Origin: Hyphochytrium catenoides
Lineage: Eukaryota > Protista > Hyphochytriomycota
NCBI GenBank assembly: GCA_900088475.1
Contig: FLMG01000368.1
Location: 124,001-188,000 of the forward strand
Direction of reading: 5' to 3'
DNA: 64,000 bases
Shown: positions 3,001 through 38,801 of the stretch, piece by piece
Position numbering within the stretch: position 1 is the first letter of the stretch
Layout: every line of letters begins with the position of its first letter
Made by a program: the position numbers and the translations under genes
Notes under the pieces: model-generated
The model's input: the letters and a program-made list of their open reading frames with translations, nothing else
What the model was told of the DNA's origin: nothing
Databases searched by the model: none

Positions 3001-3137
3001 TTTGATCATAGATAGGACAGCCAAAGGACAGGGCGAGTGCGAGGTCAATGAAATGAGAGCGACGCTCACTATTTGGACAGGTTGTCTGACAGCCAATGCA
3101 GGCAAGCAATCCAATAAAGTGATATTTTGATATTTTC

Positions 3138-3694: not shown

Positions 3695-3942
3695 AAGTTT
3701 GTCTATTTATCCATATAGCTTGCGGTCACCATCATATAGCAAGCAAAGACTATTCCTCAGTTTATTGCCCTATCTGTACCCTAAATATATCCCTAGATGT
3801 AAGGTTGATTGTCTCTAGAAAGACAACCGCGACGTAGTGCGTGGCTTCCTCTAACACGGATGATCGCGGCATTATAGCCTCGTACATCCTGCTACACATA
3901 GCGCAATGCCGCACTAAACTTCTTGTCCACAGAGTAATAGCC

Positions 3943-6900
3943 CTAATGTGCCATTATGAGGGGACCATAGCCCAAATTGTTGATGGCCCTGGCGCGTACA
4001 TAATACTCGCGTCCTGGCGTCAAACCTGTTATGACATAGGCACGGACTGAGTATAGCTGCAGGTCCATGTCGCCGCCCGTAAACACGGGGCAACCATGGC
4101 CAGGCCGCAAGGAGACAGCACCAAGACTTGCACTAGCAACTTGCGCGACGCAACCGGTGTTGCCAAGCACGATTGCTTGCCCCGAGCTCAGCACTGGGGA
4201 TAGATCGAGGGTTGGGAGAACGGTGATAATGTCCCCTGCCAGCCTCCGGACGCAGGCCTCACAAACTCGGACATTGAAGTCTCCCGGAGGCAACGGAGCA
4301 CCCTGTGTTCCGGAAATCAGAGCTGTCTCCAATGTATCTTCTTCAGATTGCGTAACCTTGCCAATCACGTCAAGGTGTTCGGCGGTGCAAGACTCTGGCA
4401 GTCCTTGTCCTTCCATGCCGTCGAGGCCAGGTCCATAGGGCATGGTAATCGCATTTCTCAGCACACTCACCGGACCGGTACACGACACGTCATCATCCCA
4501 AGTAATCAGCGAGACGTCACCAACAGGAATACCTGTGACTGGCGATGGTCCGAAAGTGATATAGTAGACGTACCCATAGTCCCATGCAGCGGAGCCGTCA
4601 CCTTCTCGTCGGACTGTGACGCCGTCAAACCGTGCCGGAAACAGCCCTTGCAGCGCCGTCTCAATATCACTGGCGGCTGCATCCCAGGAGAGGCACACCG
4701 TAGACTGACCATCAACCACCCACTTCCAACTCTGTGCCGGCAAAAGAGGGACACCAGCAGGGGAAGAGATGGAGATAATCTGCACTTCACTGCGGTCACC
4801 GCATTGGCTGTTGAAGGTATCCAGCGTGTCCCACTCTACTTGGAAACTGTGTGGGGCATCGCCACCAGTAAAGGCTGGGAGCTCCCACTGAACCAGAATG
4901 GAGGAGGCTGAATTTGGACGTGCCACTACATTCCTCAGTTCGGAGGGATGGAGAGGAGCTGGCTTGAGACCAGGGGGCCACGCGGATGCGGGAGATCCCA
5001 TGCCGACTTGATTGTAGGCAGAGACGCGAACATACCACTTATTAGTGGAGCTAAGATTATTGATGACTAGGCTATGCGAAAGCCTGCCCACAGTTGGTTG
5101 AGAGGCTCCTTTCCTGACCTCAACGACTGTACCCGAGGGATTGTTGGTGCCAGGAGTAAAGATTAGCATTGGTACATCACCTCTCTCACTGAGGAAAGTG
5201 ATAAGGATTTCATCTGAGGGGCTTGAGGCACAAATAGTAGTTTGACTGCCTCCTGCAGCCACAACGATGGCCGCCACGCCCAACGCTGTGCTCATAATGA
5301 GCTTGAACTAGAAGGAAGAAGAGAGAAGAGCCCGGTTAGTCATACGAACAAGAGAAGTGCAGAGTCGCTTAAGTGAGAGCAAACATAGTATGCCTCTTTA
5401 CTAGCCACAAGCAGTAGATATGGACTTACTTCAGAGAGCGTAGTAGTGGTTGCTATTAGGGCAGTTCTCCCCATATACGTCAGTGTGAAGTCGCCATCGG
5501 CAGTAACCGTACAAGTCAGAGCTTGCACCTCACTGACAGAGCCCAAGGTGATGGAAGGACCAAAGGGTCCCTGCAGACCGTGGTAATAGTGCCGCACACA
5601 AACGTCTCGAGTAGGACTGCTGCAGAGCAGGAGATCTTCACCAGAAACTGACATTTTGTACCCAGGGGGATCACGGTAGAGGGAGTCAAAACCACGATGC
5701 TGGTTTCCGGTAGCTGGCTTGGTAGTGTAGGTCACCATCCACGCATAGCCCTGGAAGATGAGTCGTTAGAGACAAAGACGACCCCAAAACTAAGGAAACT
5801 CTAAATCCTGGAGTTTCCAGCGCAAACACCACTCACTTGAGGCAGGAGGTTTCTCGTCACGGTAACCGTATCAATATTGCAGAGCCTCGCAAGCTGTCGC
5901 TTGACCTCTTCCGCACTGGCATCGAAGGCTAGTTGTTTCGTCCGCTGACCGTCAAAAGTCAAGAAAAATGACCCACCCAGATAAGGGAAAGTGCCGGACG
6001 CTATAGCAGCAGTCAGAACGTTAGCCTCTCTTCTCCAGCTGGAGAGCCAGATGCTTGTAACAAAACACTTACCGAGGGTAGGAGAAGACACTGTGATCAT
6101 CTGTACTTCTGGTATGTGCGCTGCCAAATGCGCAGGTACCATTCTTGATCCTCCGCCCAAGAGCGCATTAGTGAAGCTAGGCACATTGTCCCATTCAACC
6201 TATGCATGACAGAAGCAAAGCCGAATTAGCTTCTGCAATGCTCTTTATGGGCTCGTTTACTGTCAGGAGTGGTGGTTGATAAAAGAAAACGTAGTGTGAA
6301 ATGCTTTGCCTACCCGATATTGCGTCACCTCTCTACCACCGATATCCAGCGGGGTCCCCCATTGGACCAGGAGCTCAGAGTCAGAAACGACTTCTAGCTG
6401 TACATTTTGAGGTGCAGATGGCGGACTGGCAGAAATAGGGACGGAAACACCAGTTGCCGAATCCTCAGGCAGAGTCCACCCTGCGGAGTTATGAGCGGAA
6501 ACACGAAGGAAGTAGGGTTCTCCTTTACTGAGATCCGTCAGAACCACCTCCTGGGTCGGGGTAACCTTAAGCCAGGCTGAATCTTTGGCCGTAAGGTTAT
6601 TCCTATTTCCATCCAAGGCTCCTAAAGCTCCGCCACAGGACGAAGACAAAAACGTCACTCTCCATGAAAACCCATTCTGGTTTGTCCGGCGCTTCACCTG
6701 GGCCGAACAAACCGAGCTTAGCTGCTCAAGGGCGGCTTTTACGTCTTCTGCACCCGCGGAACTGGGAATAGGTGGCGTCGTCTCCAGACGGTATAGTGGC
6801 GCGAAAGACGGTCTAGCAACCGCGACACTGATTGGACCGACAAGATCCCCATGGAACGCACTGCACCCATTTACTCCGACATCTATAATCTCGAGCAAAG

Positions 6901-9900
6901 GTTGGTCTCCTTTGACCTCTTCACCTGTGAACGTGACGTAATAAGTGACCAGAGTCTCTGACGGTGACAGGGATCTAATGTCTCGAGATATCTGTTGGAT
7001 ACAGTGAGGCAGAGACGTCAGGCTCGGCCAAGTAGAGACTCTTAGACCATTTAATACTCACCTTAACGCGGTCGATATTATGAAGCGTTTCGATCTCTTG
7101 CTGGAAGGCGAGGATATCTGTCCCCTCCGCTGCTGGCCCCGTGGCCCATCGGATGCAGCCTGCTGAAAGCCTTTGACTTATCCCATCACCTCCAGTCAGT
7201 GTGGTAGCTGTTATCTGTCCTTTGAATTTCAGTCGAAAGCCTCCGGAGTCATAAATGGCCGGACTGTTCGTGCTGAACGAGAAGGTCACTTTTTGAACTG
7301 ATGGCGTTGCGCCTATCAAAGCTGCTGAATTAAGCTCTTTACTGACAGTGGCATCCTGCAACATTGCCAAGGGTAATTCGGTTGCTGTCAGTCCTGGACA
7401 GGTACACGGTTCTTCCGCCAGTCCTGCGGTGCATACAGACTTCACTCTGGCTAGTTGACCTAGGACTGGGTGGCCCACCCTGACATAGTCTCCACAAGCG
7501 AGTCTTGTACGCATATCCATGGGTATGAGGGAAGGGCCGTTCCAGCCAGTCCGTAAGCTGGTGCTTTGAGCATAAAGACCAGTTACAGAGCCCACCGCTG
7601 TGCTCAACCTATGGATCGCCACAAAGGTTTCTGTAGCCCCAGCATACTGTGCAGGCATAAACGGGTTCCCGCTTTGGCAGATAGGGAAGACGCTTGGCCC
7701 CCAGTGGACATACAGTGTGGCCAAAGGAGGAGACGAAGTAATGTCGCAGGAGGACCCAGCTTTTACCGAGAGCGACGTATCACCAGAACTGGGGCTGGTC
7801 GCCATAATCAAAGTACAGCCTGCTCATCACACGTATCAGCGCATCAAGCTTTAGTCTTCAAAGTATGGAGCTCGGTTCATAGATACTTGTCAATACACCT
7901 TCGCACACTCACCGTTTAGGCCAACCTCGGTATCCTCCACCAACACGTCGGCCTCTGAAGTAGTCAACGCACTAGACAAGAGAATAGTTGATAGACCATC
8001 GAAGCTGGATACGCGCTCTCGAAGCAGAGGATCTCCAAATGACGGGTCCAAACAGACCTACAGGTGACAACATAAACGATATCAAGAGTAAGATAAACGT
8101 GTAAGTGAACATACAGATGTTTTGACGGCATTGGTGGCACCAAACCCACGCAAAACTAACCTGATACTCATGACCCCTGATTTTCACGAACTCGCCTCTT
8201 GCGACACTCGTCATTGTGTTTGCCCCTCCCAATCCAAGCAACGAATTTGGGTGAACTCGATGCACAAAACTCTGCCCTTGTCGGACCTGCTCAGCAAGCG
8301 GCAAAGTTAAGCAAGTGTCCTTTTCTAGCCAACAAACAAAGGGGTCAGCTGGTCACTTGCCTTGAAGTACGTATATGACCCATCTCCTCCTCTACCACCA
8401 AGGCGTTTGGAGAAGCTTCCCCTATAGTCCTCTAGAGTAAGGGAAAAGTTGGTGGTGGACCCAAACGGGCCACTGTAGGCACCGGTTGTGATGGTCTGGA
8501 CGTTAAAGGCTGGTGGCAGGATCATGGTTCTAGCTTGGGGTGAATCGAAAGAAGGTGTCGTGTCATACTCAACCTTAAATTGATCGATATCAGCACCATT
8601 TGTTTCGGGAGAACCATCAAACCAAACCTACAATGACAGACAGTAAGATATCGTCATATGATACAGACCCCACACAAGGTCTTGCTTCCGCATACCTTCA
8701 AGCTCGTCGAAGAGGTTGGCCTAGAACCCAGGTTTTTTACGGGACCAGGAGGTCCAACAACTTTGGTGGCACCAGGTTCTGTGATTGCGTACATGCCGTA
8801 GCCTAAGTCGCTCGCAGCGGAGACTCTGACATAGTATTCCATTCCTATTTTGAGTGACCGAAATGATGTTTGTTACGAAGTTGAGCTACGATTGAGCGTC
8901 TAAACTAAAGAACACGCATACCTGCTCTGAGGTTCGTGATAGTCCAGTTTGAGTTGATCGTAGATGGGACCACAGCGCTGCCATAATTGGATGGCGCTAC
9001 ACCTGGTACGTCAACGCCAATGGAGGGTGTACCAGCTCCTAATAGGCGATAGTTATTAACCTCAAATTTGGCTTGTGCCCCCAAGTTTGTGAGAAATGTA
9101 ATTAGCCACGTAATGGCGCTAGCATCCTCCCTGCGAGCCACGCGAAGAGAACCAACACCTGGCAGAGTCTCAAGAATCGATCTTATCTCTTCGCCAGTAG
9201 CTTGATAGGAGATATTTTGGGTGGAGTGCTTCATTAACAAACTTCCCCGGGTTATGGGCTCCCCATTGAACGTAGCAGTAACACTAGGGTCTGCCATCAT
9301 CGCCAGCGGAATATGCGTACTGTTGAATTCCCTAGACGTGTCCGTTGACACCCTAAAGTTCCTGCCGCCGACTGAAATCGCATCCCCTCGATCTAGGATG
9401 TAACGAAGGTCGGACTCTGTGGCGGCAGTAGCCGAACCGGCCCTTACCGAGATCAGACTTGGTGAAATGACTTTAAAAGCGCCGAAGCTGATTCGAAAAG
9501 TCCCACTAACGGGCTTAGGGCTGAAGGTGATGCTTTGGACTTCTGGAACCCCAAGGAGTGGACCCACTGCACCCTTTGTAAACCATTCAACCTTGTAGCT
9601 CTTGACATCACCAAGATCAGGCGCCGGAGGAGGGCCCCAGAGAGCCATCAGAGAAGATCCTGCAAGGACGCCTACGAACCACAGTTCGTAACCCAGAGCC
9701 AGATAGGTGGTCAGTTGCAATGTCAAGTTGGGCCTGAAGTTGCTACATTATACTCGCGACTCTAAACCTCCAACGTACTCACCCTGAATAACCCTAAGCG
9801 ACGAGGGAGGAAGTAGCCGTCTTCTTGGAACTTCAGATTCCGGCATCGTAGGAGTGAAAGGCCCTGCTCCGCCTTGATAGTTCATTGCGTAAAGACGAAC

Positions 9901-12900
9901 GTAGTACCTCTTGCCAGGCAAGAGCCCTAATCATTTGCCAACTTTGTTAGGTTCCCCATTGCGGAGACACTTTACATGTTGGTTCTAGCTTTACCTGATA
10001 TGATGAACTCCCCAGCGGTGAGGGTTGTAGCAAAGCCAATTGGCTTTGCACCTAACCCTGAGTTGAAGGCTGGTGAAAGGTCCCATTCAATAACATAGGA
10101 ATTTACACCATCCCCGCCATCATAACTTGGCGGGCCAAATTTAACTTGCAAAGAGTTCCAAGTATAAAGGTACAGCCCGGGTTTCCTGTCAAAGGCGAAC
10201 TGTGCCGTGGGTGCTGATGGGCTCTGGTAGGGCACTGTGATGCCTACTGGAGCCGTCAGACGTTGATAGCCTGATAATAATAAAAAGGATTAGCCCAAAG
10301 TAGACACAAGTCAACACAGCTGAGACGTGTTCTTACCGAGACCCAGAGCACCCTTGGCTGATACACGGGCATAATAGGACTGTCCAGGAGTCAGCCCAGT
10401 GATCACATACGATTGGATTCCAGCCCTCTGGTTGTTAGCTGGTACCTCCAAGCAGGTTCCCCCACCACAGTAATTAGCACCAGCGGGTTTTGCCCCTGTC
10501 GCGTTAGCAAAATCAGATAAAAGAAGAGTTCTGTGCCCAAAGGTCTCAGTATGCCCTCAAACCTGCTGTATCCAAGGCGACGGTGACGCTGGCGGGGGCC
10601 GCGGTGGAGGAGGAAACATAATTTAGGACTGAAAGAAGTGGCTGTCGATCGACAGCTGATGTGAAGGTTACGGTGTAGGCATAGGATTGAGGGGAGGCGC
10701 CAGTGCTTCTCTTCACGTTTACAGCACCTAAAGTAAAGAAGATGATGCGATCAGCCTCGACCCCTCGCATGGTATCTTTGATAAACCGTACCTATGTCAG
10801 GTAGGTTCTCTAACGCTCTTTTCACTGCACTCTCGGTCGCATCATAGGGTAATTCATTGGTCCAGGATGACAGACGTCCCATACGGAACGTCCCAGTAAG
10901 GTCCTCTCCTGATATTGTGACCACTTGCACCTCTGCGGTGTAGTCGTCAAAGGGCTTGGAACTCCATTCTACGAGGTAAGACGAGATTACACTCCCTCCA
11001 TCTCCTACAAGATCGCTATGGTGTCCTTGGCGAGGATACCGCCAGCTAACTCTCAAGCTTGTGCCCTTCTCCCGAGGAGATGCATCTGCGTCTTCTTCCA
11101 ATGTGTCTAGAGTCACAGGATAGGCGGGAGGATCGGGCTTTGTCATTGGGGTGACGGGCAATGAGGTTGAAGGCTCTCCATAACCCAAGGAATTGTGAGC
11201 TTTGACCCGCACGTGGTAACGCGTGCCCATTTTCAGATTTTGTATCAGGTACGCGTAAGTATTCATATGATGCAAGGAGAGTGCTACAGAGCTAAAGTCT
11301 GCACAGGTCGTAGCTAGTGGTGTCAGGGTGACACTATTACCAGAAACGGTGGATACCTAACGAAAATCCGGAGGTTAGATCGTACTTGCTATTGGCGAAG
11401 TGACTCCGATGCAGTACACCCGATTCATACCTTTGCCACACAGTTTCTTTGGGCTTTGTCAATGACCAAGGTCATTCCAGCCTCTATGGTAGATAAATAG
11501 CTACTGGTATCAACAGTCAGAGTTAAAACGAAGCCGCTGGACACTAAATCCGTGCTACAACTATCACAGATCTTTCTTGTGAAGCTTCTGACAGTGTTCG
11601 CTGCAGTTAAGCCAAATTGTAAGTGACTCCTAAAAGGCCATGCATTTCGAAGTGCCCAGCCCCACTTGGCTTCTTACCGCTGCTAACAGAAATCTCATGA
11701 AAATCCATTGGTCGGCCGGAGTTGGATGAGAAGGTTGGCAGTGTGTCCCACTCAATCATGAACCTGGAGACGAGTACGTCGTGAGAGGTAAAAGCGGTCA
11801 CTAGGCAAAGGTTAGGTATAGGAGATCACTTACTTGTCAACTGATTCGAGTCCAAGCCATAAGCTGGGATCCGAGAAGGCAACCTCCACCGTAGTCGCGG
11901 AGAAAGTGAGGGGTGAGCCCACGAGGCCGTTGGAAATTAGCCATGGAACTTCCAAGGTCGGCGGTAGAGGAAGCTGTCTCACGGCAATATCATTGGAAAG
12001 CGAAACCGCGGCTTCACAATCCAGTAGACCGAATTCACAGGTAGGTACCGCTACGGTAACCATAGGGCTATGGCCCCGACTATTCGCGGCGCGAACACGC
12101 ACGCGGTATGTTCCGCCAGGAGTTAAGTTAGTCAAGGTCACCACTAGATTGTCTGTCTCTCCTCCGTCTGTATGATAATATGTTACCCAGTTATCCGGAG
12201 ACATCACCTCGATAGTCATCGGCAACATACTCGCGCTGTAAAACTAACCATCAGTACAGAGATCATGTACACTGATTTTGTGTTCTACCTACCTGTGATA
12301 TAAGCACTTATGGTTTGATGAGGCCGAATAGTCTACTGAGACCCCATTCCAAGGTGACAACACGGAGTTCAGCGTAAGAGTGCAAGAGTAGAACGCTGTG
12401 AGTGAAGTCAATCTAATTGTCCTCGGCAGCAGACCAGGAGTGAGGCCAATATCTGATGAAATTGTCACCCTGTTGCCTAGCAAACAAATCTCCATCAGTT
12501 GTCATTTTGTGGGACGTTGAAGGTAAGCACAGAGCACCTGTCATGAGACGAGCGCACCCGGAACAAGCAGTTGTAGCTGCAAATCCATCTTTTGAATGTT
12601 CTATCACGTAGCCTATTATAGGAGATCCTTGTGCCACTCCTGGTGACCAGCGGACTGAGAGTTTCGTTCGGTCGTTCCATACAGCGTACACCTACATTGT
12701 GAGAAAAGCAGTTATATAGTCATCTCTTTAGGGTTCTAGTTTGAGCTATTCCCTGGCCCTTACTTTGGCATCTGCTGGAGGCTTTGGAGGAGCCGCCGGG
12801 AAATAAGGATTAGCAGGAAAGCTCTGGAAAGGTCCAGTGCCGACGGCGTTTGTTGCAGCAATTCTTAGATGGTAACCTTTCCCCGAGGCCAGACGGCCAC

Positions 12901-15900
12901 CATCCTGGACAACCCGTTGGCGTACCTAAAATTGTACCAAGCATGACGGTTAGTACTCAACTATAGTAGAGCACTCCTGCAGTAGAGAGTTGATAAAACC
13001 TGTCCTGCGATGGCAGTGCATGTTCCAGAGCCGTCAAAAGATGAGACTACGATATCCTCCATATCTCCTGCCATACTCGTTCCTGAGAATGTGACGAAGT
13101 ATGTTGCATTGTAGGTCCCAATATTGTTTATCCGGACGGCTATTTCCAGATTATTCGCAGATACAGATGATAAAGCCTCCAGAGAAGCTTTTAAAGCTCC
13201 TGTGGTCGTCGCGCCAGATATGCAGCTTGTTGTAGGTTTCTGTACCAGGGAATAGCTTGCTCCAGCGAAGATCCCGCACTATAACATGCGGTTAGAAAGG
13301 TTAGGAGAGGGACAGGACCCAAAATCAGATCTGCTATGGACATACCTGGTGATCACCTTTGACAGGCACTGAAGATGAAAGTAAGTCACCGCTGGGAGTA
13401 CCGGATATCTGGACTGAGCAAATAACAGTGGACGTGGGGTCCATAATTCCGAAAATCGCTCCAATCCCAACGTCGGGCACCGAAGATAGCGGTACATTTA
13501 GCTTCAGAAGTCCACTGCCAGTGATCTCCGTAACACACAATGAGCAGGTGGGAATGGAGAGTTCAAATTTGCCGAAAGAAAGTTTGAAGCTTCCGGCAGG
13601 GGCAGTAGCACTAGTAGATGTTATGATGAGCGCCTGGACTTCTGTTCCAAGCGAGACTTGACAAGCAGTAGGATTACACAAGACAGATCCCCCGGCACTG
13701 TCAACCATATCAAAAGCAGCCGTTCCTTGAGGTTCACCATACGCGCTACAATAATCGACCGATTAAGAGTCAGAAACATCCGCCATGGACAATAGCTTCG
13801 GTCCGCATCAACGGCTACTCACCTATTGAAGGTGGGCAAGGGATCCCACTGGATCACATAGGAACTAATAGTAGAGCCAGCTGCGCCAGCCATGAAGCCT
13901 TCGGCATTGAAGGTTGGCCCTCTGAAAGTCAAATCCAGCTGATCCGGTATCCCTTTCTTACTCTCGGTGGCAATGAGGTCCGTAGGAATATGGGGAGTCC
14001 GTGGTCCTGGGGAAAGGGATCTCGGGTCTGATACGGCGGCGGGGCCATACCCGTAGTTTGTCCCTACGGTAGGGTTCCCGTTGAAGGCACGGACTCGGAC
14101 AAAAATAGGGACATCTGCCGTCAGGCCATCGATAACATAGCTAGTGGTGGATGCGTCGACCATCGCACTACCGGTGGACGCCACTGTCCAGGGGTTACCG
14201 GTGAGCAAGATCGTTGAGGCCCTGAAAGGTAGGGTATTCAAAGATATCGTTGATATGTTGCCCGTATAGCTAGTCGTATTAGTCCAATCTCACCTTTCAA
14301 ACTGGTAGTGCGAATCCCATTCGACTACGTACTTGAGGACGGGAACCGAACTGGCATTTGGCTCCCTCCATCTTACTCCTAGGCTTCTGTCATCTATCAC
14401 CGAGATCTGGACCTGGGGGCCACAATTTATCATAGTCAGACTTATAGCAGATTAAGACTAAGATCAGCGCTCTGTGGCTGTCCATACCTGCTGAGGTCTC
14501 GTGGGCGGTACCCCGAACACCTTCAGTTTGGTGGTAGAGTAAAAATCACCCTCCCAAACTTTGGTAATACTGATTAGGCCATCAATGTTATTTGTCGCGC
14601 TCGCTATGCTCAAACTAACATCCTTTCCCTCTACTCCTTCTGGTGTGGGGTAGGCAAAGGTGATATGATAGCGGATGTCTATGGGCACCGGTGGCTGTCG
14701 AAGAGAAACGCTGTTATCCGTCTCGGCACACAAACGGCAGAATACAAGGGAAGGCGGATGCCAAGTCAACTCTTACCAGAGTTCCTGGGTCCTCGAAACC
14801 CTTGGACTGATCGATTCTAGTTACCCAGAGAGGACCCACGCCAGCAATTTTCTGAAGCGCGTCTGCTAGAGTCTTCGCTCTTGCATTCATCTTGATGGGG
14901 CTTGTGTCACCCAAAACAATCCCTTCAAATCAGGAGGGATACAGGATCAGTTCTTTCTGGCCTGAGAAGATTGAGTCACTGACACTAGACAAGACTTACC
15001 CTTCCAGGTTGCCCTCAGGACAAAATTCTCATCCTCATTGAATATTGTTGGCAAGGAGACGGTCGGTCCAGGGTGGACCAAGGAGACTATCACTACGGCC
15101 AACCTGCTGGACATTGACTTTGCGACAGCAGGCTCACTAAATCCTACGGAGTTGTAGGCCAAGACTCGTATGTAGTATACTTCAGATGGCGCCAGTCCGG
15201 TGATAGTGGATGAATAGAGCCTTTTCCCTTTTATGGCCTGATTACAAATTTTTACTCAGCCTCTCTGGAGGTGCTAGGAGATAGTACAAAGCTAAACCTG
15301 CTTACCTGAATTGATAGCTTTCCCGAGGCTGCAGACACGCCGCTGAAGCTAGGGCTATTATCCCATTGTAGCGAGTACAAAGTTATTGTCTCTCCTCCAT
15401 CAAAAAGGGGGACCTCCCATGTCACTAGGGCTGAAGACGCTGTACGTGTGTAAGCCATCACAGAGCGGGGTGCACTCGGCGGAACGTTCCTCATGGCTAT
15501 TGCTAATGGCGCAATGACAGGGGTCCCACGTCCAAGATTGTTCCATGGCGTCACCCTCACAAAATAGGGACCCTTATGCGGAAGAAGCCCGTTGACCTCA
15601 AAATCTGTGGGTACGACTCCGGCCTGTACTTTTCTCGTCTTTACACAAACATTCGTTCCAGTCAGGGTTCCTCCGCATGAAACCGTCGTTGCTGCAATGC
15701 TCAGGCTGGGATCTGTCTTGACAAGGAGCTGAGGAAGGTTGGCTTCGCTACTAATGAAGGTAACCCTCCATGCCCGACTAACGCGTTGAAGTGGTACACT
15801 GCTCATAGCGTTAACATCATGTGAACGCCTCACGACGAGGCTTCTAATCCCGGGTAGACCTGCAATTAATGGGATTGGCACACTTACTGAAAACCGTCAG

Positions 15901-18900: not shown

Positions 18901-20175
18901 AGCGGAGGTAAAGCACTCAAGCAAGTATTTTGAAATAGTACCTCCGTGGGAATCCACCGGCGCCTGCGTAGAAGTCGCCATCAGACGGTCAGAAATTCAA
19001 GAGGGAACCAGAACACGCACCTGCCAAGACACCACAAGCGACCGTGATGGATCGTCCATAGAAGCCACATCTTCCGGGCCTGATGTTCGCAGGACGACGC
19101 CCCCAACGTCGATTGCATCTGGCGCAGCTATCGGAGCAGAGCCAAAAGGTGTGGCGACGGTGAAGTTGCTCAACCCCATTATATTTTTTGCAGCTACACG
19201 TACGTAAAGTTGCACCCCCGCTATTAGTGAAGCGATTTTATAGTTGTAGAGCGCCTCGGCGAACGCGAACTGGGCACGTTCGCGCTCCACTTGCTTCAGA
19301 TGTAATGATTCAAAAGAAGGCGAGATATCCCATTGAACAACATAGGATGTCACTGCAGCTCCATTATCGCTGTCAGGGCTCTTCCAGTAGACTTTTAGGC
19401 TTGAGTCACTATCTCCCACAGACCTTACGAAAGTCTCCAGCGGAGCCGTTGGCGATGCCATTGGTTTCAATGACCGAGATTGAGACGGGAATCCTAAGCC
19501 AGCTGAATTTTCAGCAGTCACTCTGACGGAGTAGCCTTGACCCTGTCCCCGCTCCAATGGTGGGATAGTGTCCGTCGGACGTGAATTTAGTCCATCAATG
19601 ATGAATTCATAAGGTCCAAGATCCTTTGGGACGAACAAGACTGAATGTGCCGTACTTGTTGCTCCAGCAACCGAATCACTGGACGTGCAAGGTAAGTAAA
19701 CCCTGCTGATGGTGATGGCTCCTGCACAAAGAGCGATTTCTGGGACCACACTGCCACTGCTGCTAAGAGCAGCCCCATCAACTGCTAAAGATACCTGTCC
19801 AAAGTAAGAAGTGAAAGTGATACTATAATCATAGCTCTCAGTCGCGGAGAGGCTGTTGTCCACATACGATATGCGGACAGGTCCCACACCTGGTAAAGCT
19901 TCTACTGCTTTTTGAAGTTCCTGAGGGGCAACATTGAAGGAGAGAGGCCCTGTGGTAACTGCACCACCCAATGCTAGGGTGAAGAAACCCTGATTGACCG
20001 TGCGATGGATTCGAAGAAGCTGTACGTCCTCGATATGATCTCCAGTCTCCCACCATTCAACTCGATAAGTAAGGCTGTCATCACCCCCATCATACAGGGG
20101 CTTTTCCCATTCCACCATAAGCGAGGATGATCCAGCTATCCGCAGAGCTGTAAGTATGGGCGGTCCCGGGAGGAC
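3943..20175 (-). other. C-terminal block of about 17 FN3 domains with inserted modules
   Basis: Repeated FN3 halves, e.g. LMVEWEKPLYDGG, LKVYWKSPDSDNG, LKVVWSYPMSDGG, LVTWEVPLFDGG, LLVQWGTPLDIGG and ILVQWELPAFTGG, each completed by a GL..G..Y.VRV.A.N motif. Confidence 0.8.
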
Positions 20176-29100: not shown

Positions 29101-32100
29101 ACCGGTCATCTTCGTGTTGTTGTTCTGATCTTTTGCCTGGATGTAGAAGGAGGCCGTTACTCCAGCCGTTGCACTTCTTAGGCCTTGACCAAAGGCTGTG
29201 GTGTAAGGGTAGTCTGCGGCACCAGGCACCACTTGTATAGTGAACGGGCTTCCCACAACGTGATCAGCATAAAGGAGGTTAGAAGAAGGGATAATTGTTC
29301 TCGACAGGCTATGGCTGCTCCATTCGAGCCGCACAGCGGATGGGCCTTTCTCAGCAACATAGTCAAGTCTAAAATGGTGGTAACGCCCTTTCGTAAGCAC
29401 CACTCGAGCGTGCTGGATGACGCCAGAGCTTTGACTATCAGCATCTATAATCACTTGATGATCAACCCACACCTTTATAGTATCTCTTGCATACACGAAA
29501 ATACTATGTAGCTCCGAAGCACGTCCCAGCAGCTTTCCTTGCCATCTCACGCTTGTATAGTCAGAAAAGGTAGGAGAGATTAAGCCTTCAGACCAGGTGA
29601 AAGCAATCTCTCTATCAATGCGCTCTAGAGCTGGTTGACCTGAACGAGCGCGGAAGAAAATCAGACATGACCTACTACTTGTCCGCCAGAAGCTTGGCCG
29701 GTTCGTCAGGAGCTACACAAACCTTGGAACCAAGGATTGTCAAAATATTCTGCTCTAAGTCCACCCCTTCGTAGCTGCTGGATCGCCAGAGAGTAGTTTC
29801 CGACGGCGCCAGGAATGTAATTTGCTTGATAGGTTGGTAGGCCGGAGATTTTCTTTCTCACCTAAGGAGAGGGAAGCAGATACACTGCTGTGAATCCTCT
29901 TACCCAAACAGAAACCGAAGCTGTAATTATGGATAAGGCTCGAACCTGCAACGTGGGGGAGCTTCCAGAAAGAGATTTCCGAGAACCCTGCTGCAGTTTG
30001 CGAATGCGAACTAACGGGTTAGACCCGACCAAGGCAGAGGCGTCTGACCCCATCAGACTGAGATCTCCCACTTCGGATTTGAAGGTTACGGTCCACTGGT
30101 ACTCCTGCCCAGGGCTTATTGGGCCCGAACGATTGACCTCAACCTCGCCAACAGAATATAAAGCCTCTAATGCAGACGTCATCTCTTTAGCGGAGGCATC
30201 ATGCGGTAGTGGGCTTGTACTCGCTCCTCCAAAGTCAAGAGTGAAAAATCCTTTCAAAGGAGTCGGTGAACCTCCCAAAGTCTCAATTAGCTGGATATCG
30301 TAGCGATAGGGGTGAGCTCCCAGCAATGGCAGAGAACCTAGCGTGCTCAGAAAGGTAATCGTCCACCTATGCCCTGTGTCTAGGACCTCACGGGTGACAT
30401 CGAGCTGACCCACATCAGTCAAACTTTATTTAGTACAGTGAGCGGGGAGAAGAGATCAGATTAAGGTTGTCTTCACCTGGCCTTTTAAACCGGCTTACCT
30501 CTCAAGGGCTGTCTTTAGCCCAGCTGCGGAAATGTCGAAAGGAAGATTCCCCGTATTCGCAGATCCGAAGGACACTACGAATGACCCTTGTATTGGAGAA
30601 TAACCCTTGTGATATAGTGCCTTAGTAACCTTCAATCCATTTCTAGCTAGCAGAGATTGCATGCCTACCTTCACTGCCTCGTCGACGGTCACGCGGCCAC
30701 CAATGCCAGTGAGGAAGTTTGTTGCTCTTACTTCGAGCAGAGGAACATCACCTACGGGATCCCTGAAGGTAACACTCCAGGACCCTGCGTTGTCTGCACC
30801 TTGGACAGAATTCCTCACCGTTACAGAACCGATATTGGGGAGAGTCTCTAACTTGGCTTTGACATTGCTTGGGGTGTCCAAGACATCTAGAGTCACAACG
30901 ATCCCAGCACCAGCCAGTGTAATGTCGAAGGATCCGGTCAGAGTTCCCGAGTCTACCGCCCTGGTAATAACCTGCACCTCAGCAGTGAAAGGCTGTTGGG
31001 CATACGTTTGGAGGGTTTGGACTTCCGTCACTCCTGTCTGCTGCTTGATAAAACTTTGGCTTGGAATAGAGGAGTCGACATTTCTCAAGGAAAGGAGGGG
31101 CAGATCCCCATACCGTTCTAAGAACGTTACTTGGTACACTGACCTTATCGCATCTACAGACCTGCTTACCAATACCCTTCCGATGTTATCTACTGTCTCC
31201 AGCACCGTCTGCACAGCAAGAGCTGCCGAATGATCTGATAGAAGTTCTAGCTGAGCTGCATCTAGAAGACCTGTTGCACTGTTAACAGCTCCTGAGATCC
31301 AAGACGTAGTGTCCCAATTGAAACTAAATCGGCCAGTGCTCCCAATCGGCAAGGATATGGCCTGCACATCATAAACAAGACCATTATATGTAGCCACGCC
31401 GGCATCCATCGCCCAAGCATCAGAGAAATTGCTAAACATTCCAGTGGAAGTCCTCCAGAGCTCAGTAAAAAAGATATCCGTCCCCGCTGTCCCTGCGTGT
31501 TAGAAGTTTGTCCCAATTAGTTAGAGGCTTGTCCGCATCGACCGACGAGTACTTACCAGTTACAGAGTCGACATCAGTCACGACTCTTCCGTCTGCCTTC
31601 CTTGGCTCAATAATAATTTTGTTAACATCTCCTTTGATGTGCTCCGTAATCTTGACCATAGAGGGATCATCAGTACCAGTGAATCCCTCTGCTTGAAGCA
31701 GTGGTACGTCCCCCTTCCTTGAGAGAAACGTAATTAGCCATCTGATGGCTGTCCCTGGTATGAGACTATCATCGCGGGTGATATGCACACTGCCAATACC
31801 GGTGCCAGAAGCCATGAGGGCTTCCTCAAGTTGGGCGGTCGAGAAGGTAGATTGCACTCGGGCAGGACCATTATCAACCCCAGGGATCCTCAAGAAGAAT
31901 TCATTGCTAAGGGATGGTGAGATAGTCACGAGCTGCACCTCATTGACCACTCCAGCTATTCCTTCTACCAATGCGCTGCCACGCACTGTTGTTTTGTCGG
32001 CACTAGCCCCAGATCTGGTGTCAATGACTGCTGATGGAGGGGATACGGAGGAGCCGACCGCATTCAAGGCAACAAGCTTAAAAGCGTACAACGCGCCTTG

Positions 32101-35100
32101 CCGGAGTCTATTCACAGCAAACTCAGTGACCTGGGGCTGGTCTCTGCCATCAAAGACCAATTCCGCCACAGTCCCGCGTTGGATGGAGGTAATCCCTATC
32201 TGAGCTCCGGTACCAGCAAGCCTTCCGCTAGTGACGGACATCAGCGGCAAGTCGCCAATATCCGTAAGAAATGTGATATCCCACGACCGCTGACCGTAGG
32301 AGTAAACCTCTTCAGCCACGGAAAGCCGGCCTATAGACGGCAGGTTCTCTAGCATTCGCTTTAAAGTGTTTGCGCCTACGTCAAACGGGATGGACGAAGT
32401 CTCATGACCTCGAAAGGAGACCGTAAAGTCGCCGCTTAACGGAACTATACCAAGCACCGGCGACGTCACAGACACCGCCGCCTTCTCGGTAGGGCTAAGG
32501 TCAGCCAGTAGGCTAGAGAGGACAACTATTTGGGGAATCCGACTATCAGCCGCATTGAAGGTGATGGTCCACATGTAGAGATTTGGTCCATTTGGTCCTG
32601 ATGTGACCGTAACATCAAGATAGTTAGTGAAGGCGTTCAACTCAACCGCCACCTCAGCAGCGGAGGCCGTCACTGGAAGAAGTCCTGTCTGCTCTTCGCC
32701 AATCCGCAGCCTAAAGCTCCCTGTAGCCTTCTCAATGCGAACTATCTGGACTTCCTCAACAGGCGAGTCCACCATTGTTGTTATGCGTTGGACACTCTGC
32801 TTTACTGGGGTGGGATCCGCCAGAGTCGGGAATGATATTCCACCAAACATCCACAGTTGGTACCCGGTGATCGGAGATCCGTTGCATGAGGCGGTGGGCC
32901 CTACACATGGGCTGTCCCAGGAAACTGTGATGGACGACTGCGACACATCCTTTGGCTCTGGAGCTGCTGGAGGATAGGGGTCGTCCGCCAGCAAAACTGT
33001 CAAAGGAGGACTCTGCGAAGATCTACCTTCCACATTTGAGGCTGCGACATGAAAAGTGTAGTAGCTTCCTGGACTGAGGGCCATATTGCTTGATACGCCT
33101 ACACCCCCAACAGCAGCAGAAGTAAAACGCCAGGATCTAAGGTCCGCAGGTATGCTGGATACCACTTGCAGCACTGCTCCTGTTGCATCTTCACACACCA
33201 ACTCAAAACTGTTTATAACGGCTCCCCCATTGTCTGCTGGAGCCTCCCAAGTTACAACGATATCGAGCAGAGATAGACCTGATATGACACGGGTAGTCGA
33301 ATCCCGTTTTGGTCTAGGCGGAGCAGCAGGAGGTCCAGGTGCTCGAGGGACGTAGGCTGCTTCCGGACTGAACGCCCCATGACAGAGTGCTGTTGGGTCT
33401 GCGGATTGGCAATAGCTAGTTGCACGAACCTGCCATTAAGGTAGGCAAAAATATCGTTTAGCGCTTGGCTTGCAAGTTCAGCACCAAAGCCCGGTCTCTC
33501 ACCTTAAATCTGTAGACTCGATTACTCTCGAGCCCTTCTACTAGTGCGGTAGCTCTGTAACTTAAGCTTGAAGGGTCTCCCGAGCCATCATATATAATAT
33601 TATAGTCTCCTCCTGCCCATCTTTCCATGAACACCTGGTAGCCACTGATAGAGCTGCCCCCATTTACAGTTGGCGGTTCCCATTGAATCTCAATAAACGT
33701 TGGACCAGACGTTTTGAGAATGGGCAACCTTAAAGGACCCGGAGGTTTGTTTGAAGGTATCACGGGGTCTGGCGACGCCAATCTTCTCCTTCCATAGTTG
33801 ACTGCATTGTGCGCAAAGGTCCGAACGTAAAGAGGTTTACCTGGGGTAAGTCCACTTATTGAGCTCTCAAAAGGAGGTCCATTTGACAAGTCAGTATGCA
33901 AGACCCTCAAAGGAACCGAACTTCCTTCAACTATTTTGGTAACATCAATGCCTGGGGTTGATCCAGACCAACCGCCTCGAAGGAGAAGGTTCATCGGCAC
34001 CAAGTCATTCAATGAGCCCTCGTTACATACGTCGGTCCCCAGCGGCGTCCTTCGGCAACCAAGGAACGTGACCCTCCAAGTAAAACCATTTGTTAAGACC
34101 AATCTCTCGACTTCCACTCCACCTATGTTATCCATTTCTAGCAAAGCATGTTCGAAGTCCTTTGCCGAGGCATCATGTTGTATGGTGGGGGAAAGAAATG
34201 TCCTTGCGCCATCATTGTATTGCAATTGAAAGGTTCCTCCCAGCGGATCTGATCCGACTACAATGACCCCCACAGTCGTATGGACTCCTGCTCCGGTCAA
34301 GCGGCTTTCATCGCAGATAAGTGTTGAGACTTGTCCTAACACATACGGTATGAACGGGGTTAGCAAAGTGAGATACTCTATGGCCTCAACTGGGCCGTAG
34401 CGGCCCGAAGTATCCGTTATCATACCTGAACCAGGCGGAAAGCTCCCTGGCTGAGAAACAAAGGTGATGGTCCACGAGAACTCTCCTCGCGGAGAAGGAG
34501 GACTGCGAGTTACTTCGACTGTCCCAACATTTGGTAGACGTTGCAGATATGCTTTAACCAGAGTGTCTTCCGCGTTGTAGGGTAGCCATTCAGTAGTATG
34601 GCCTGCCATTATCAGACGAAAGAACCCTCCTAGGTGATTGCCCCTTATGGAGGCTGCTGTTCCAACCGCTTCTCCATCGGTCTTCACGAAAACGTTTACT
34701 CCGTTGCCAGTCAGAAGGTTCCTTGAAGTCGGAGTTGTTATCGCCGCGAAAGCGCCAGCTTCGTTAAAGAGAACTTGCCAGAGCTAGGTCACCGTGCAGC
34801 ATTTCCATGAAGACACCAGTTGCGAGTGATGTGAGCTAAGATTATACATATGTCGATTACAGCGACTTACCCTTTGCCCGGAAGCTTGCTCAACGCTACC
34901 TAAATTGGTGCTGGTGAGCTCTGTGACTGTTACTCCTCCAGCAGCAGTAATTGTAGGTAGTGCGTTGATACCGGTCTGGAGAATTGATGTCGTGACATTT
35001 GAAGGGAAAAAGAGTCCTGTCATCGCGCCAAGAAAGCTCAGGCTGAAGCTGCCGCCAGGAGGAGCTTGACCCTTTAAGGTCTCTGTGATCTAGACCATAT

Positions 35101-38100
35101 TAAGGACACTGTAAGCTAAGGAAGTATTATTGAAGTGAGGTTTGCTTACATCTATCCTCCTATTTCCTTGCAAGTTGAAGACGTTGGCGGTCAGTAGTGG
35201 CATATCTCCAGCAATTCCGTCCACAGAGTTGAAGGTGACTTCAAAGCCCCCCACGCATCCCAAGGTAGAACAAGGGGAGCATGCCATTGTTGCGCCATTT
35301 ATGAACTGGATTGAAATGTCCCTCACTTTGGAGATGCTTTTGATCGCCTGGGCGATAACCGAAGTTTGACCCTCATCTGCTCTGATAGGCACAGAACTTT
35401 GTCCAGCAAAAGAAAGGGTGAACGTTCCGCCTGGAGTTCAGTAGCGCGTGTCGTCAATGGAAAAATGGGTCATCTCTGACCAGTGGTGACAATAACAAAC
35501 CTGTGGCGTCGCATTGAACTAGTTGAATTTCGGAAGTAGTTGGTGGCCCTGTGTAGCTTGACGAGATATGGAGTAGCTGGGTTTCTTGTGGTGAGGTACC
35601 CGCAAAAGTAGAGATCGTCTGGACGGCTGACCGCACAGGAGCGGTTAAAGTAACCGCCTGAATCTCGTCATTAAAGCTACAGTTGCAACAGCAAAGCAGA
35701 GATATAGCGGAGTGTATAAATAGAAAGGCAACACAAACTTCGCTATAAGAGCGCGGTACCTTGTTTGGCTGTATTCTATGGTGTAGGCATCGACGTTGCT
35801 CCCACCCGAATTAACTGGAGCATCTAGAAGAACTTTTACAGTGGTACCATCCTCTACGCTGAGTCGAACTTTTTCAACTACCCCTGGCGGAACTTAAGGA
35901 GAGACAACGGGCAGAATTAGAGATTAATTGCAGGCAACAAGGGCAGTCCGTTACTAGATACTTACGCCTCGATGGGGCAAGTGAGGGCGGTTTGCTGTAA
36001 GCTGGAGCACCAACTCCGAGCAGGTTTATGGCAGAGATACGGAAGAAGTAGGCGATTCCTTCACTGAGCCCACTAACAGTCATGGAAAGGTCGCTCAGGT
36101 CTGTTATCAGTGTGGTTCCTTCTGGTAGACCGAGTTCCCGATCTCTGGTGTTGAATGCCGGCATTACCCCCTTTACAGCTTCTGTGACACTTATCATTGG
36201 TGATGTCCCACTCATTGTTAGGAAGTCTGCTTCTATTAAGGGAAGGTCACCTAGAGCGGTGAGAAATGTTATAGTCCAGGAGTAGCCGTTGTTGAAGTCG
36301 GGCCCTGAGCGGACAATATTTACCGTTCCCGAGGTACCCAGTCGTTCTAGAGAGTTGCGTAGGTCTTCGGCAGCTATATTGTACGGCAAGTATTCCGTCC
36401 GTTGCCCTTGGTAAAACAGTGCAAACGACCCGCTAAGTGGTTGGGAGGTGCTTAGTTGCAGGACTGATGCAGTCACCGTATCTCCTGTGCCTAGGTCAGT
36501 CGAAGATACGCCAAAAGTGGCAGTACCTCCAGCGGCAACCTCTATGGCAGGAACAGAACCTGCATTAGTGTCAAAAGTGATGAACCAAGTGCAGGATGCA
36601 TCAGGCGAAGCATCGGAAGCGGTCACAGTTACTTGACGAATGTCCGCCAATGATTCCAATTCATACTTGATTTGATTGATGTTCCCATTTTGAATTGTGG
36701 ACATGGCAATGGTATCATCACCGACCGTCACAGAGGTGGAGGGTGTTACACCTCCGCCAAAGACTATCAGCTGTATCTGCGGCAGGTTTCCGTTGTTATT
36801 GTGGAAGGTGACTTGCCATGTGCAGGCCTGAGTAGGAATAGAAGGGGAACTGGAGACGGTAATTGCTCCCGTGACGGTTGGGAGATTTTTTAACTCACTC
36901 GCAATCTGAGCTGCAGTTGCGGAGCAGTTCCCTCGAAGCGGGTTTGCCTTTATGTCACCGGTCGTTCTCGTTTGGCCCTTTATATTGACCACCATGGCAA
37001 AGGTCAGGGACGACGACACCACATTATCTCCACCGAACAAAGTAGTGTCGACAGTTGAGGTCTGAATTTGCTGGATCTCTGGCCGCGATGGATTACAACT
37101 ACCATCCTCAGGATTTGCTAAGATGATTCCTGTCTCTTGATTGTTGAAGCGAAGCCTGAACGTCGTGCTAGAGTGAACCTGTGCCATTGAAGGGGCTGTT
37201 GTGATGGATTGTACTGCCTTTCGCGTGCCTTGGAATATCTCCTTGATAAAAACTGCCGCTGAGCTGGGGCCAAGGTTTTTCGACTCAGTGAGCGTCACCG
37301 AATCCACTAAAAGTTCAGGGATGTTCCCTTCTCTTTCAAGGAAAGAAATGGTCCATGTATAGCCTCTTTGTAGGTCTGGCCCAGTGCGTGCAACTTTGAT
37401 GTTACCGAGGGTGCTAATAACTTCCAGCGCTGTGGCGAAGGTTCGCTCATCGGCATCGAACGCGATCGGAGAGGACAGGCTGCCCTCCAAGCTGAGTGTA
37501 AATGTTCCACCGTTCAGTTCGTTACCTCTAACAACTGTTCCAACAGCTACTGTGGCCCCAACACCGGTCAAGGAGGCAGTGTTAGGGACCAACTCAGGCA
37601 AATCTCCTGCGTTTTGGTTCGAGGTGAAGGTGACCAACCATTCGTAACATCCTTGGTCATCAGGTCCACTGCGCAGGACGGTCACAGTGCCCACAGTAGC
37701 AAGCCCCTGTAGGTACAAATAACGATTAAAACGACAGCAAGCCAACGTAGGGATGAGTCAATTTTGTGTATTGACAGTATCCTCACCTCCAAAGCCCTTC
37801 TCATGTCATCCTCACTGGCGTCGTAGGAGATGCTTTCGGTATCTGCTCCGCTGAAGGAGAGAGTAAAGTATCCACCTAGTCTGTTACCTGGTTGAGGTAC
37901 CCCTATCTCCACCGTTGCCCCCACTCCGGTTAGAGATGAGCTACCCAGTTCAAGGGGTGGAACTAGCCCCAGGGCAGGTGAAAAGGTGATAGTGTAAGAT
38001 AGTCCGGTAGAGGGTGCCCCAGAGGCTGTGATGCCAACAATACCGGCCAAACCAATATTACTCATACTCTAGAGGAATATAGATAGATCAGTCTTTTAGG

Positions 38101-38801
38101 GACTCTGGGATGAACTACGAAAAGTTACCTGTAAAATAGACTGCAAGGTATTCCTGGCTGGCCCTGACGGATCAGCATTATATGCGATCTCGCCTGATAT
38201 TTGTCTAGAACCGCCTGACCGAGATGTATCCAAGATGAGGGCAAAAGACCCACCCAAGGCCTTTCCCTGGGCTACGCTAAGCCGTACCACCTGAACCGTC
38301 GACACTGGAGTTGCACTGCTTTTCACGCTTTGGACCGCAGGCACATAAACCGCGGATGTAGTCACGCTCTGCACCTCATTGGGCCCAAGATGAACTGAGG
38401 TCGAGATCACTTGAACTTCTTGTACTCCCGGATCCGTGTCCCACTCCACCTGTACAGTAATGGGAGCCGCAAGGCTTTGAGGGATGGGGATGGTAACGGT
38501 ATAAGTAGATTACGCACTTTGTATGCCTTGATAGGCGATCCTCCATCGTGGACAGGTGGATTGAACGTAACTCTGAGGCTGTTGTCATCAACGACACTGA
38601 GAGATGGCTGACTGGGAGCTGCTGGAACTGTTGAGGAAAGCGAGAATATGAGTATAAAATGCAGACGACTTCACTGTCAGCTGCATTGGACACCTTTGGC
38701 TTCCTACCTGTGAGTTGACCAGTTGCCTCTCCTACAAGGTACCCCAGGATGCAGGAAAGGACAGAGACGGCTGCCGCCGCTCTGCGGCTCTTTCCATTCA
38801 T
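3943..38801 (-). CDS. Giant (~10,000 aa) secreted multi-domain protein with FN3, filamin-Ig, PA14 and novel repeat modules ('titin-like'); about 59 exons
   Basis: Dozens of minus-strand ORF fragments join in frame across short introns, e.g. 38628-38707, 38450-38517, 38069-38128, 34336-34425, 24235-24310, 8287-8360 and 6001-6072. The protein starts MNGKSRRAAAAVSVLSCILGYLVGEATGQLT|VPAAPSQPSLSVVDDNSLRVTFNPPVHDGGSPIKAYK|VEWD and ends GLTPGREYYVRARAINNLGYGPLIMAH*. FN3 motifs (W..P..DGG..I..Y.VEW; GL..G..Y.VRV.A.N..G) recur throughout. Length is estimated as span minus about 58 introns of ~75 nt. Confidence 0.9.
8287..8360 (-). other. Non-canonical GC-AG intron in the giant gene
   Basis: On the minus strand it reads TTC AAG|GCAAGTGA...GCTGAGCAG|GTC CGA CAA. 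Removing these 74 nt joins YTYFK to VRQGQSF in frame. The donor matches the strong AG|GCAAGT consensus typical of GC donors. Confidence 0.65.
20225..20720 (-). other. PA14 domain 3
   Basis: GLEAEYYNN...RVDGAVDFFW...SAHWQGFV...YTFYLIYNDGVQLSFDG...IRLSWSS...IIPSRRL. Confidence 0.8.
24515..24998 (-). other. PA14 domain 2
   Basis: GGLTATFF...IDYNW...YSIRWIGHL...YTFYV...GVRLYINGQVVID...IRLLWSS...VIPSDNL. Confidence 0.8.
29265..29770 (-). other. PA14 domain 1
   Basis: GGLRAEYFDNPWFQ|GQPALERIDREIAFTW...SVRWQGKL...KVWVD..VIID...RLEWSS...IIPSSNL. Confidence 0.8.
32020..38627 (-). other. N-terminal block of 5 FN3 domains, three of them split by large inserts
   Basis: FN3 starts near 38627, 35890, 33750, 33350 and 32980. 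Their C-terminal halves read SGLSEGIAYFFRISAINLLG, SGLTPGKPLYVRTFAHN, EGLESNRVYRFK, LSPGSYYTFHVAASN and RLRQGALYAFKLVALN. Confidence 0.8.
38718..38801 (-). other. Predicted signal peptide of the giant protein
   Basis: Basic n-region (MNGKSRR), hydrophobic h-region (AAAAVSVLSCILGYLV) and a small-residue cleavage site (A-T-G|Q) immediately before the first FN3 domain. Confidence 0.65.

Follow-up and report, generated by a model that had tools for sequence, protein, structure and literature searches.

The 64,000-nucleotide (nt) stretch of the Hyphochytrium catenoides genome analysed here (contig FLMG01000368.1, positions 124,001 to 188,000, referred to below as the window) carries one intact, spliced gene whose predicted product is a giant protein of 10,227 amino acids (aa) and 1.089 MDa. 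The spine of this protein is predicted to consist of about 31 beta-sandwich domains, namely 22 fibronectin type III (FN3) and about nine filamin-type domains, with side modules inserted into their loops. Such nesting, which affects two-thirds of the host FN3 domains, is an unusual protein build that defeats routine domain annotation. The most probable reading, to which we assign roughly 60%, is that the product is a secreted, anchorless rod whose role at the surface is multivalent adhesion or that of a scaffold or template, and that it is conserved in oomycetes and their relatives. The positions of the features are collected in Table 1.

The window consists of eukaryotic DNA with about 50% GC. 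Between 3943 and 38801 its minus strand is crowded with long open frames in shifting phases, which reach 888 aa from stop to stop. At this GC content an open frame of 888 aa is essentially impossible by chance, and the minus strand is for this reason considered coding. The gene model was built by a splice-aware dynamic programme trained on the long frames and joined from the ATG at 38801; four junctions were corrected locally by homology score against the relatives. The final model has 57 exons and 56 GT-AG introns of 42–122 nt (median 74), and its coding sequence of 30,684 nt contains no internal stop. Above residue 6,960 or so, the numbering in the first model (10,174 aa) and the final one differs by up to 53. 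Retraining the site matrices for a second splice pass was no improvement: long exons were cut into too many pieces and conserved sequence was lost, and the result was rejected. The protein has an isoelectric point of 5.2 and 1.0% cysteine, shows no Ser/Thr/Pro-rich mucin-like stretches across its whole length and, in the first model, holds 38 N-x-S/T sequons versus about 60 roughly estimated by chance from composition. Judged by these features it looks like a chain of packed globular modules, not a glycan brush.

An earlier note on this DNA, made from the letters of the sequence and a list of open reading frames, had claimed one spliced gene of about 1 MDa at 3943–38801, and comparison with relatives bears this out. 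The family was found by an exhaustive profile search of cluster representatives with the 627-aa frame of exon 5 as the query, which matched 2,142 representatives, many of them 5,000–7,800 aa long; a word-indexed homologue search with the 888-aa exon, which restricts its candidates by length, gave two matches, both PA14-only. Named members from oomycetes are the 'secreted protein' of Thraustotheca, the 'similar to titin' protein of Albugo, the 'Projectin/twitchin' of Globisporangium and proteins from Aphanomyces, Pythium insidiosum and Nothophytophthora. Beyond oomycetes the named members come from the brown alga Choristocarpus, from the stramenopile Cantina marsupialis, a free-living flagellate, and from one MMETSP transcript. 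The oomycete orthologues (Thraustotheca clavata AIG55740.1, Nothophytophthora RLN71996.1, Globisporangium splendens KAF1314868.1, Aphanomyces astaci and Pythium insidiosum) have the same domain order at 30–47% identity and agree with the giant protein in the signal region at the N-terminus as well as in the point at which they end; those that are complete enough show three PA14 and 8–11 filamin matches. These orthologues are uncharacterised, exist as partial or fragmented predictions and carry generic or misleading names.

BLAST chains of the orthologue fragments, mostly from oomycetes, overlap, keep the same order and together cover residues 30–10166 of the giant protein. The footprint of P0004, the Thraustotheca fragment, extends over residues 30–2696 as a single high-scoring segment pair with 40% identity; P0009, a protein of 6,721 aa, covers residues 57–8480, P0010 residues 713–5847, P0102 residues 3397–7365 and P0079 residues 5575–10166. 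Since overlapping collinear orthologues span the block boundaries, which an artefact of the splice model could not yield, the predicted gene is confirmed as single and intact, not several. The contrary view is that several adjacent genes, or a decayed gene, were joined artificially by the splice model. It may draw on the behaviour of the dynamic programme, which always yields some chain of exons, as it did past the stop codon, as well as on about six weak junctions. However, the joined frame runs for 30.7 kb with no stop, single predicted proteins elsewhere (P0009, P0010 and P0079, as above) cross the block boundaries collinearly, and family members known as single assembled transcripts encode 6,001 and 7,479 aa, so we regard an artefactual fusion as extremely unlikely.

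The domain content was established with a Pfam scan of 30 exon frames and with hidden Markov models (HMMs) made from the protein's own repeats. The Pfam fn3 model (PF00041) matched in many exons with up to 58 bits (cut-off 25), Filamin (PF00630) with 79.9, 45.4 and 34.8 bits (cut-off 26.9), PA14 (PF07691) in three copies with 52.2, 39.1 and 38.6 bits (cut-off 24), and Ig_GEX2_N with 39.9 bits; kinase, calponin-homology, Ig I-set and EGF domains had no match in the frames scanned. The self-derived HMMs gave five FN3 domains in the N-terminal block, 17 in the C-terminal block and three PA14 domains, while the filamin HMM found seven pieces, which amount to about nine repeats once the split copies are read by eye from their flanks. 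All matches of these domain models within the window lie inside the giant gene and on its strand. The layout given in the earlier note, FN3x5 - filamin x9 (+PA14x3) - FN3x17, therefore stands as far as the counts are concerned, with about nine filamin repeats being plausible, but it covers only about one third of the residues. The picture of a linear string of domains has to be abandoned: it missed a further module, called X below, which accounts for 38% of the protein, and it did not see that domains are inserted into other domains, which involves 15 of the 22 FN3, several filamin and all three PA14 domains.

The nesting is seen most clearly in the FN3 domains, the matches to which are mostly half-domains. 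The N-halves end at 'Y.VEWD', the C-halves start before the 'Y.VRV.A.N..G.G' strands, and the two kinds alternate strictly along the protein with X modules in between. The 22 FN3 domains comprise seven whole matches and 15 pairs of an N-half and a C-half; in the latter the loop after strand C holds one to six X modules or inserts of another kind. Splitting of this sort is also seen in several filamin repeats, and partial Pfam fn3 and Filamin matches flank the inserts. Each of the three PA14 domains is placed between a filamin 'G.Y.L.V' strand and a closing 'GSPF.V.V' strand, and the Pfam Filamin match just before the second PA14 domain breaks off at profile position 83 of 93. One FN3 domain with one nested X module was modelled as a unit (Table 1); it has 31 full-length matches, that is, 30 places in other family proteins and the query itself. 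Foldseek with this model returned only matches with a low template modelling (TM) score, which were FN3 tandems and included receptor ectodomains. From the logic of the sequence and the predicted TM score (pTM) we infer that the split FN3 halves would close into one sandwich.

Precedents for both parts of this build exist. In the insulin/IGF-1 receptor, the FnIII-2 domain carries a large insert domain in the loop between strands C and C', and filamin repeats are used extracellularly in plant GEX2. However, these are single cases in membrane receptors, whereas in the giant protein nesting is the rule, found in 15 of the 22 FN3 and several filamin domains, and folded modules, up to six of them in an array, form the inserts.

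Module X is an alpha/beta unit of ~100 aa that iterated HMMs recovered in about 40 copies. It follows the pattern EVQ...GG.F.L.F.G..T..I.(Y/F).AS...V..AL..L..IG.V.V.R....G..W.VTF....GDLP.L; about 34 of the 40 copies are nested in loops and six are in line with the spine. None of the copies has a Pfam match, and exon 5 alone contributes 580 aa that match nothing in Pfam. AlphaFold2, run on an alignment of 85 X sequences, gave a model with a mean predicted local distance difference test score (pLDDT) of 86.4. Among PDB sequences the X profile matched gp23, the tail-tip cage protein of mycobacteriophage Bxb1, with an E-value of 2e-38, and a second, independent alignment reached 6e-43; the three tandem repeats of gp23 align with X motif by motif. 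Matches to the C-terminal parts of the Bxb1 capsid protein (3e-6) and of the tail tube protein gp19 (6.5e-4) were also obtained. Foldseek with the X model retrieved 9d93, 9d94 and 9d9w, all from Bxb1, and 8giu (the list includes phage Patience) with probability 1.0 and TM scores of 0.56–0.67, and, among the predicted structures of BFVD, actinophage major, minor and fibre tail proteins with TM scores of up to 0.74 and a root-mean-square deviation of 2.6 A. The PHROGs families for tail sheath (PHROG 2839) and for major tail protein (PHROG 10909) are matched by 60 and 53 of the 85 X copies, respectively. Even a single X module (29982..30296) used in tblastn found 55 records of Mycobacterium, Gordonia and Microbacterium phages at 33–36% identity over the whole module, and these matches fall under minor tail and tail sheath genes.

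Both the profiles and the predicted fold indicate that X is a member of the CTE-like domain family present on the capsid, tail tube and tail tip of Bxb1 and on actinophage tails; the name 'CTE-like' for the Bxb1 domains comes from a later phage paper (PMC13252515). The phage domains of gp23, gp19 and the capsid protein have the motif EVQ...GG.F.L.F.G..T..I.Y.AS...V..AL..L in common with X. They differ in their use: in phages the domain occurs once or a few times, C-terminally or within a tail-tip protein of the virion, whereas the giant protein has about 40 copies, mostly inside FN3 loops.

A second module with no Pfam match, Y, has ~65–70 aa and the pattern CxxC ... G..I.V ... C.A.V. It occurs in at least seven copies in the giant protein and is present in 32 of 166 family proteins, including P0030 of Albugo. 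Besides the example in Table 1, copies lie at residues 3214–3279, 4435–4502, 7580–7661 and 8072–8148 of the final model. The last of these begins with 'RKICDSC' only when the revised exon start at 11600 is used, which supports that revision.

The modules of the array are not copies of one another in any recent sense. All 37 X copies tested are closest to a copy in another organism, not to a sister copy, and the best match often sits at the collinear position of an orthologue; likewise, four orthologues have exactly three PA14 domains. Both observations show the module array to be old and position-specific rather than a recently amplified spacer. A tree of the N-terminal 700 aa, midpoint-rooted and indicative only, groups the window copy with the oomycete orthologues but places it outside a well-supported clade of Saprolegniales and Peronosporales, as would probably fit an oomycete that branched off early or a near relative. 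Among the unnamed sequences in this tree is P0022, a family member of 4,172 aa with filamin repeats that was deposited under the moss Sphagnum balticum and probably comes from a protist in the moss sample. Four further giants (P0030 from Albugo, P0015, P0056 and P0151) combine FN3 and X, have neither Pfam filamin nor PA14 matches, and end with a Cys-containing tail of ~25–30 aa beyond the last FN3. The family therefore has at least two types of giant paralogue.

Secretion of the giant protein is suggested by its first residues. The N-terminus, MNGKSRR-AAAAVSVLSCILGYLV-GEATG, has the succession of charged, hydrophobic and small residues typical of signal peptides, and in a heuristic hydropathy scan it is the sole convincing hydrophobic segment of the protein; the three remaining peaks are beta-strands or helices of X modules. 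Orthologue N-termini are likewise hydrophobic and are followed by the matching first FN3. P0004 bears the name 'secreted protein' in a curated in-silico secretome of Thraustotheca, for which the source paper applied SignalP, TargetP and WoLF PSORT and excluded proteins with a TMHMM helix. The claim of a signal peptide thus gains support from three sides, the pattern, the orthologues and the secretome label.

At the other end, the stop codon comes nine residues past the FG loop of the last FN3, the terminal residues being '...GYGPLIMAH'. The orthologues P0079 and P0128 end 7–9 residues past the equivalent loop. The sole GT ahead of the stop is a poor donor (GTCCCC), positions 1–3900 hold no convincing coding sequence and no hydrophobic frame on either strand, and the heuristic hydropathy scan found neither a C-terminal glycosylphosphatidylinositol (GPI) signal nor a later transmembrane helix. 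Since the donor is poor, nothing downstream in 1–3900 appears to be coding and P0079 and P0128 end alike, the absence of a membrane anchor is, on the evidence of the sequence, genuine. What had been claimed, an end directly after the last FN3 with neither a transmembrane helix nor a GPI signal, is thereby upheld. An additional 3' exon for a transmembrane or kinase domain, named in the earlier note as a finding that would speak against it, was likewise not encountered, either in 1–3900 (coding or hydrophobic frames) or among the exon frames scanned with Pfam (kinase). An AATAAA is located ~180 nt past the stop of the giant gene, near 3762.

The protein might nevertheless be tethered to the membrane, either because a further exon downstream or a non-canonical splice has escaped notice or because it is covalently attached to a polymer of the wall or to a partner protein; it would then be a surface receptor or adhesin. 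The last FN3 does end abruptly after its FG loop, and an unconstrained dynamic programme was able to run the frame past the stop. This extension past the TAG was rejected as a set of junk micro-exons, as it consists only of exons of 20–240 nt with long introns and removes a conserved FN3 motif. Together with the shared end point in P0079 and P0128, the poor donor and the lack of a hydrophobic frame in 1–3900, this makes a hidden tether highly unlikely.

Titin, twitchin, projectin and filamin invite comparison with the giant protein, and two of its relatives are named 'similar to titin isoform N2B' and 'Projectin/twitchin'. Like the giant, these proteins are of megadalton size and built from FN3- or Ig-type beta-sandwiches, with repeats that are position-specific and not homogenised, and cytoskeletal giants also carry both FN3 and filamin repeats. 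They are, however, cytoplasmic, have no signal peptide and contain kinase or calponin-homology actin-binding domains, whereas none of the latter, nor Ig I-set, was matched in the exon frames of the giant protein. Its signal-peptide-like N-terminus is conserved in orthologues, one of which is included in the secretome mentioned above, and PA14 and the X module known from phage surfaces are modules of extracellular type. An intracellular titin-, twitchin- or filamin-like function in the cytoskeleton thus seems a most unlikely explanation, and the giant is not a titin or a filamin despite the database names of its relatives.

The function we propose for the secreted rod is inferred entirely. The signal peptide would route the giant protein into the secretory pathway. 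Outside the cell its spine would form a rod of the order of 100 nm with dozens of knobs of different kinds along it, and non-covalent contacts may keep this rod in the cell coat, the wall or some other structure of the surface. Among these contacts could be glycan binding by PA14 and perhaps, by analogy with the exposed phage domains, by X. Such a rod might serve in multivalent adhesion or provide the scaffold or template on which an extracellular assembly is built. Position-specific partners would be expected rather than the role of a simple spacer, because the modules are individually conserved and their copies are not homogenised.

The rod-plus-lectin adhesins offer a functional parallel. 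In these proteins a long Ig-like or FN3-like rod presents a sugar-binding PA14 domain away from the cell. The Marinomonas primoryensis ice-binding adhesin is a giant bacterial repeat adhesin with a PA14 ligand-binding region, and Flo and Epa are PA14 adhesins of fungi. Bacterial and fungal adhesins are anchored, by an outer-membrane retention module, GPI or a wall link, and their spacer repeats are near-identical. The giant protein resembles them in combining a rod with binding modules, but it has no anchor signal, every one of its modules is different, and the binding modules are nested all along the rod. A further difference from fungal PA14 is that the Asp-Asp calcium motif appears by eye to be absent.

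Several points weigh against the reading as a secreted, adhesive or scaffolding rod. In the three PA14 domains the equivalents of the Asp-Asp calcium motif appear to be RD, SG and ND, as judged by eye and not by structural alignment. Documented ligand binding by X was not found in the literature, nor was transcript, proteomic or localisation evidence for the gene or its orthologues. The signal-peptide and transmembrane or anchor calls rest on a heuristic sequence scan, and the closure of the split FN3 domains is supported by the logic of the sequence and by pTM but not by a contact map. Finally, about six splice junctions are uncertain, with an effect of tens of residues that leaves the overall picture unchanged. 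Searches of the literature on FN3/filamin/PA14 giants in oomycetes, on zoospore proteomes, and on Aurantiochytrium and Cafeteria yielded nothing relevant, and we found no paper that describes the family, a eukaryotic X domain or the nested architecture.

The main rival to the secreted adhesive or scaffold rod is a role in the tubular flagellar hairs (mastigonemes) of stramenopiles or in another flagellar surface structure, for example as a length template, a basal connector or a terminal filament. Two independent X profiles matched chains of PDB entry 9ufe, with E-values of 1.2e-3 for the 'Tubular mastigoneme protein', 0.009–0.027 for OCM5 and 0.09–0.1 for OCM6. These values are weak, but the matches concern an equivalent region in three chains, cover the full module and keep its hallmark positions. 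The mastigoneme proteins are, like the proposed rod, extracellular proteins of stramenopiles, and ~100 aa of their sequence can be aligned over the full length of the X profile. Those members of the wider family whose source is named come from stramenopiles too (oomycetes, a brown alga and Cantina marsupialis), and repeats that are not homogenised are typical, in giant proteins, of molecular rulers, a role established for titin and nebulin. On the other hand, the 9ufe matches are near noise, and PCNA chains score alike in one of the profile searches. The mastigoneme proteins are only 366–723 aa long and oomycete Mas is described as EGF-like, while no EGF-like domain was matched in the exon frames of the giant. 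Moreover, a common domain alone does not put the giant in a hair, and the main text of the papers on the Phytophthora zoospore membrane proteome and extracellular vesicles does not mention FN3 or titin-like proteins. The kinship of X with the mastigoneme proteins is therefore suggestive, not established, and a flagellar-hair role of the giant is considered unlikely. A bolder extension of this idea, quite unlikely in our view, would make X a common building block of extracellular 'hair' structures in stramenopiles, from a family otherwise seen on actinophage virions. The giant would then determine the geometry of such a structure as its template or connector, with each of its ~75 non-identical modules docking a specific partner; the tubular mastigoneme, a defining trait of stramenopiles, would be one example.

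The function suggested in the earlier note, that of an extracellular fibre, coat or hair, is a reasonable one, and the weak match between X and the mastigoneme proteins lends the 'hair' option some colour. Oomycetes are major pathogens of crops and fish; their spores stick to hosts and build coats and flagellar hairs, and few of the proteins involved are known. In the databases the family is found under muscle-protein names or broken into fragments. Its recognition as one conserved, apparently secreted giant provides a concrete candidate for surface architecture or adhesion. The occurrence of X on phage particle surfaces, and perhaps in mastigoneme proteins, raises the question of what this domain binds and by which route it came into both.

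Table 1. Features of the giant gene, in positions of the window
Feature	Position	Strand	Basis
Whole gene, ATG at 38801 and TAG at 3945-3943	3943..38801	-	splice model and collinear orthologue tiling
Signal-peptide-like N-terminus, aa 1-27, in exon 1	38721..38801	-	sequence, hydropathy scan, orthologue N-termini
N-terminal block: 5 FN3, three of them split by 6, 4 and 2 X modules after the 'Y.VEWD' strand	31957..38625	-	self-HMM, partial Pfam fn3
In-line array of 5 X modules between the FN3 and filamin blocks	30006..31956	-	HMM
X module matching phage genomes directly	29982..30296	-	tblastn
Central block: ~9 filamin (5 contiguous, ~4 split), 3 PA14, ~9 X, some Y	20170..30005	-	Pfam, filamin HMM, reading of flanks
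PA14 domain 1, includes intron 14, between filamin 'G.Y.L.I' and closing 'GSPFTIQV' strands	29260..29762	-	Pfam, 52.2 bits
Best contiguous filamin repeat	28382..28696	-	Pfam, 79.9 bits for the exon; HMM positions 1-105
PA14 domain 2, inserted likewise, followed by 'KTPFSVDI'	24504..24902	-	Pfam, 39.1 bits; flanks
PA14 domain 3, includes intron 22, followed by 'GSPFSVIA'	20215..20719	-	Pfam, 38.6 bits; flanks
C-terminal block: 17 FN3, 12 of them split by X, Y or other inserts	3946..20169	-	HMM halves, partial Pfam fn3
Modelled unit: one FN3 with one nested X	19444..20184	-	AlphaFold2, pLDDT 87.7, pTM 0.74
Reference X copy, predicted beta-beta-alpha-beta-beta-beta, ~100 aa	19741..20043	-	AlphaFold2, PDB profile, Foldseek
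Module Y example, nested in the last FN3	4060..4275	-	iterated HMM
C-terminal half of the last FN3	3952..4080	-	protein end '...NNLGYGPLIMAH' followed by the stop; orthologues stop at the equivalent position

The surroundings of the giant gene contain several further open frames. On the plus strand, ~3 kb upstream of the start of the giant gene and thus opposite to it, a 381-aa open frame with no Pfam match lies at 41730–42875. Several minus-strand frames at 48578–53342 have weak matches to adenylate kinase and nucleoside diphosphate kinase and together resemble a single gene with several exons, of a kind that is often present in flagella. The minus-strand regions 57999–60530 and 62381–63442 contain two frames with weak cyclic-nucleotide-binding matches and a clear mitochondrial carrier (208.7 bits). 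The long frame of the carrier has no start codon and must therefore be preceded by at least one upstream exon; its closest relatives reach at most 40% identity. Rfam families and tRNAs were not detected in the window. Its first 2 kb are distinct in composition, with a GC skew of -0.19 and an AT skew of -0.14 on the plus strand.

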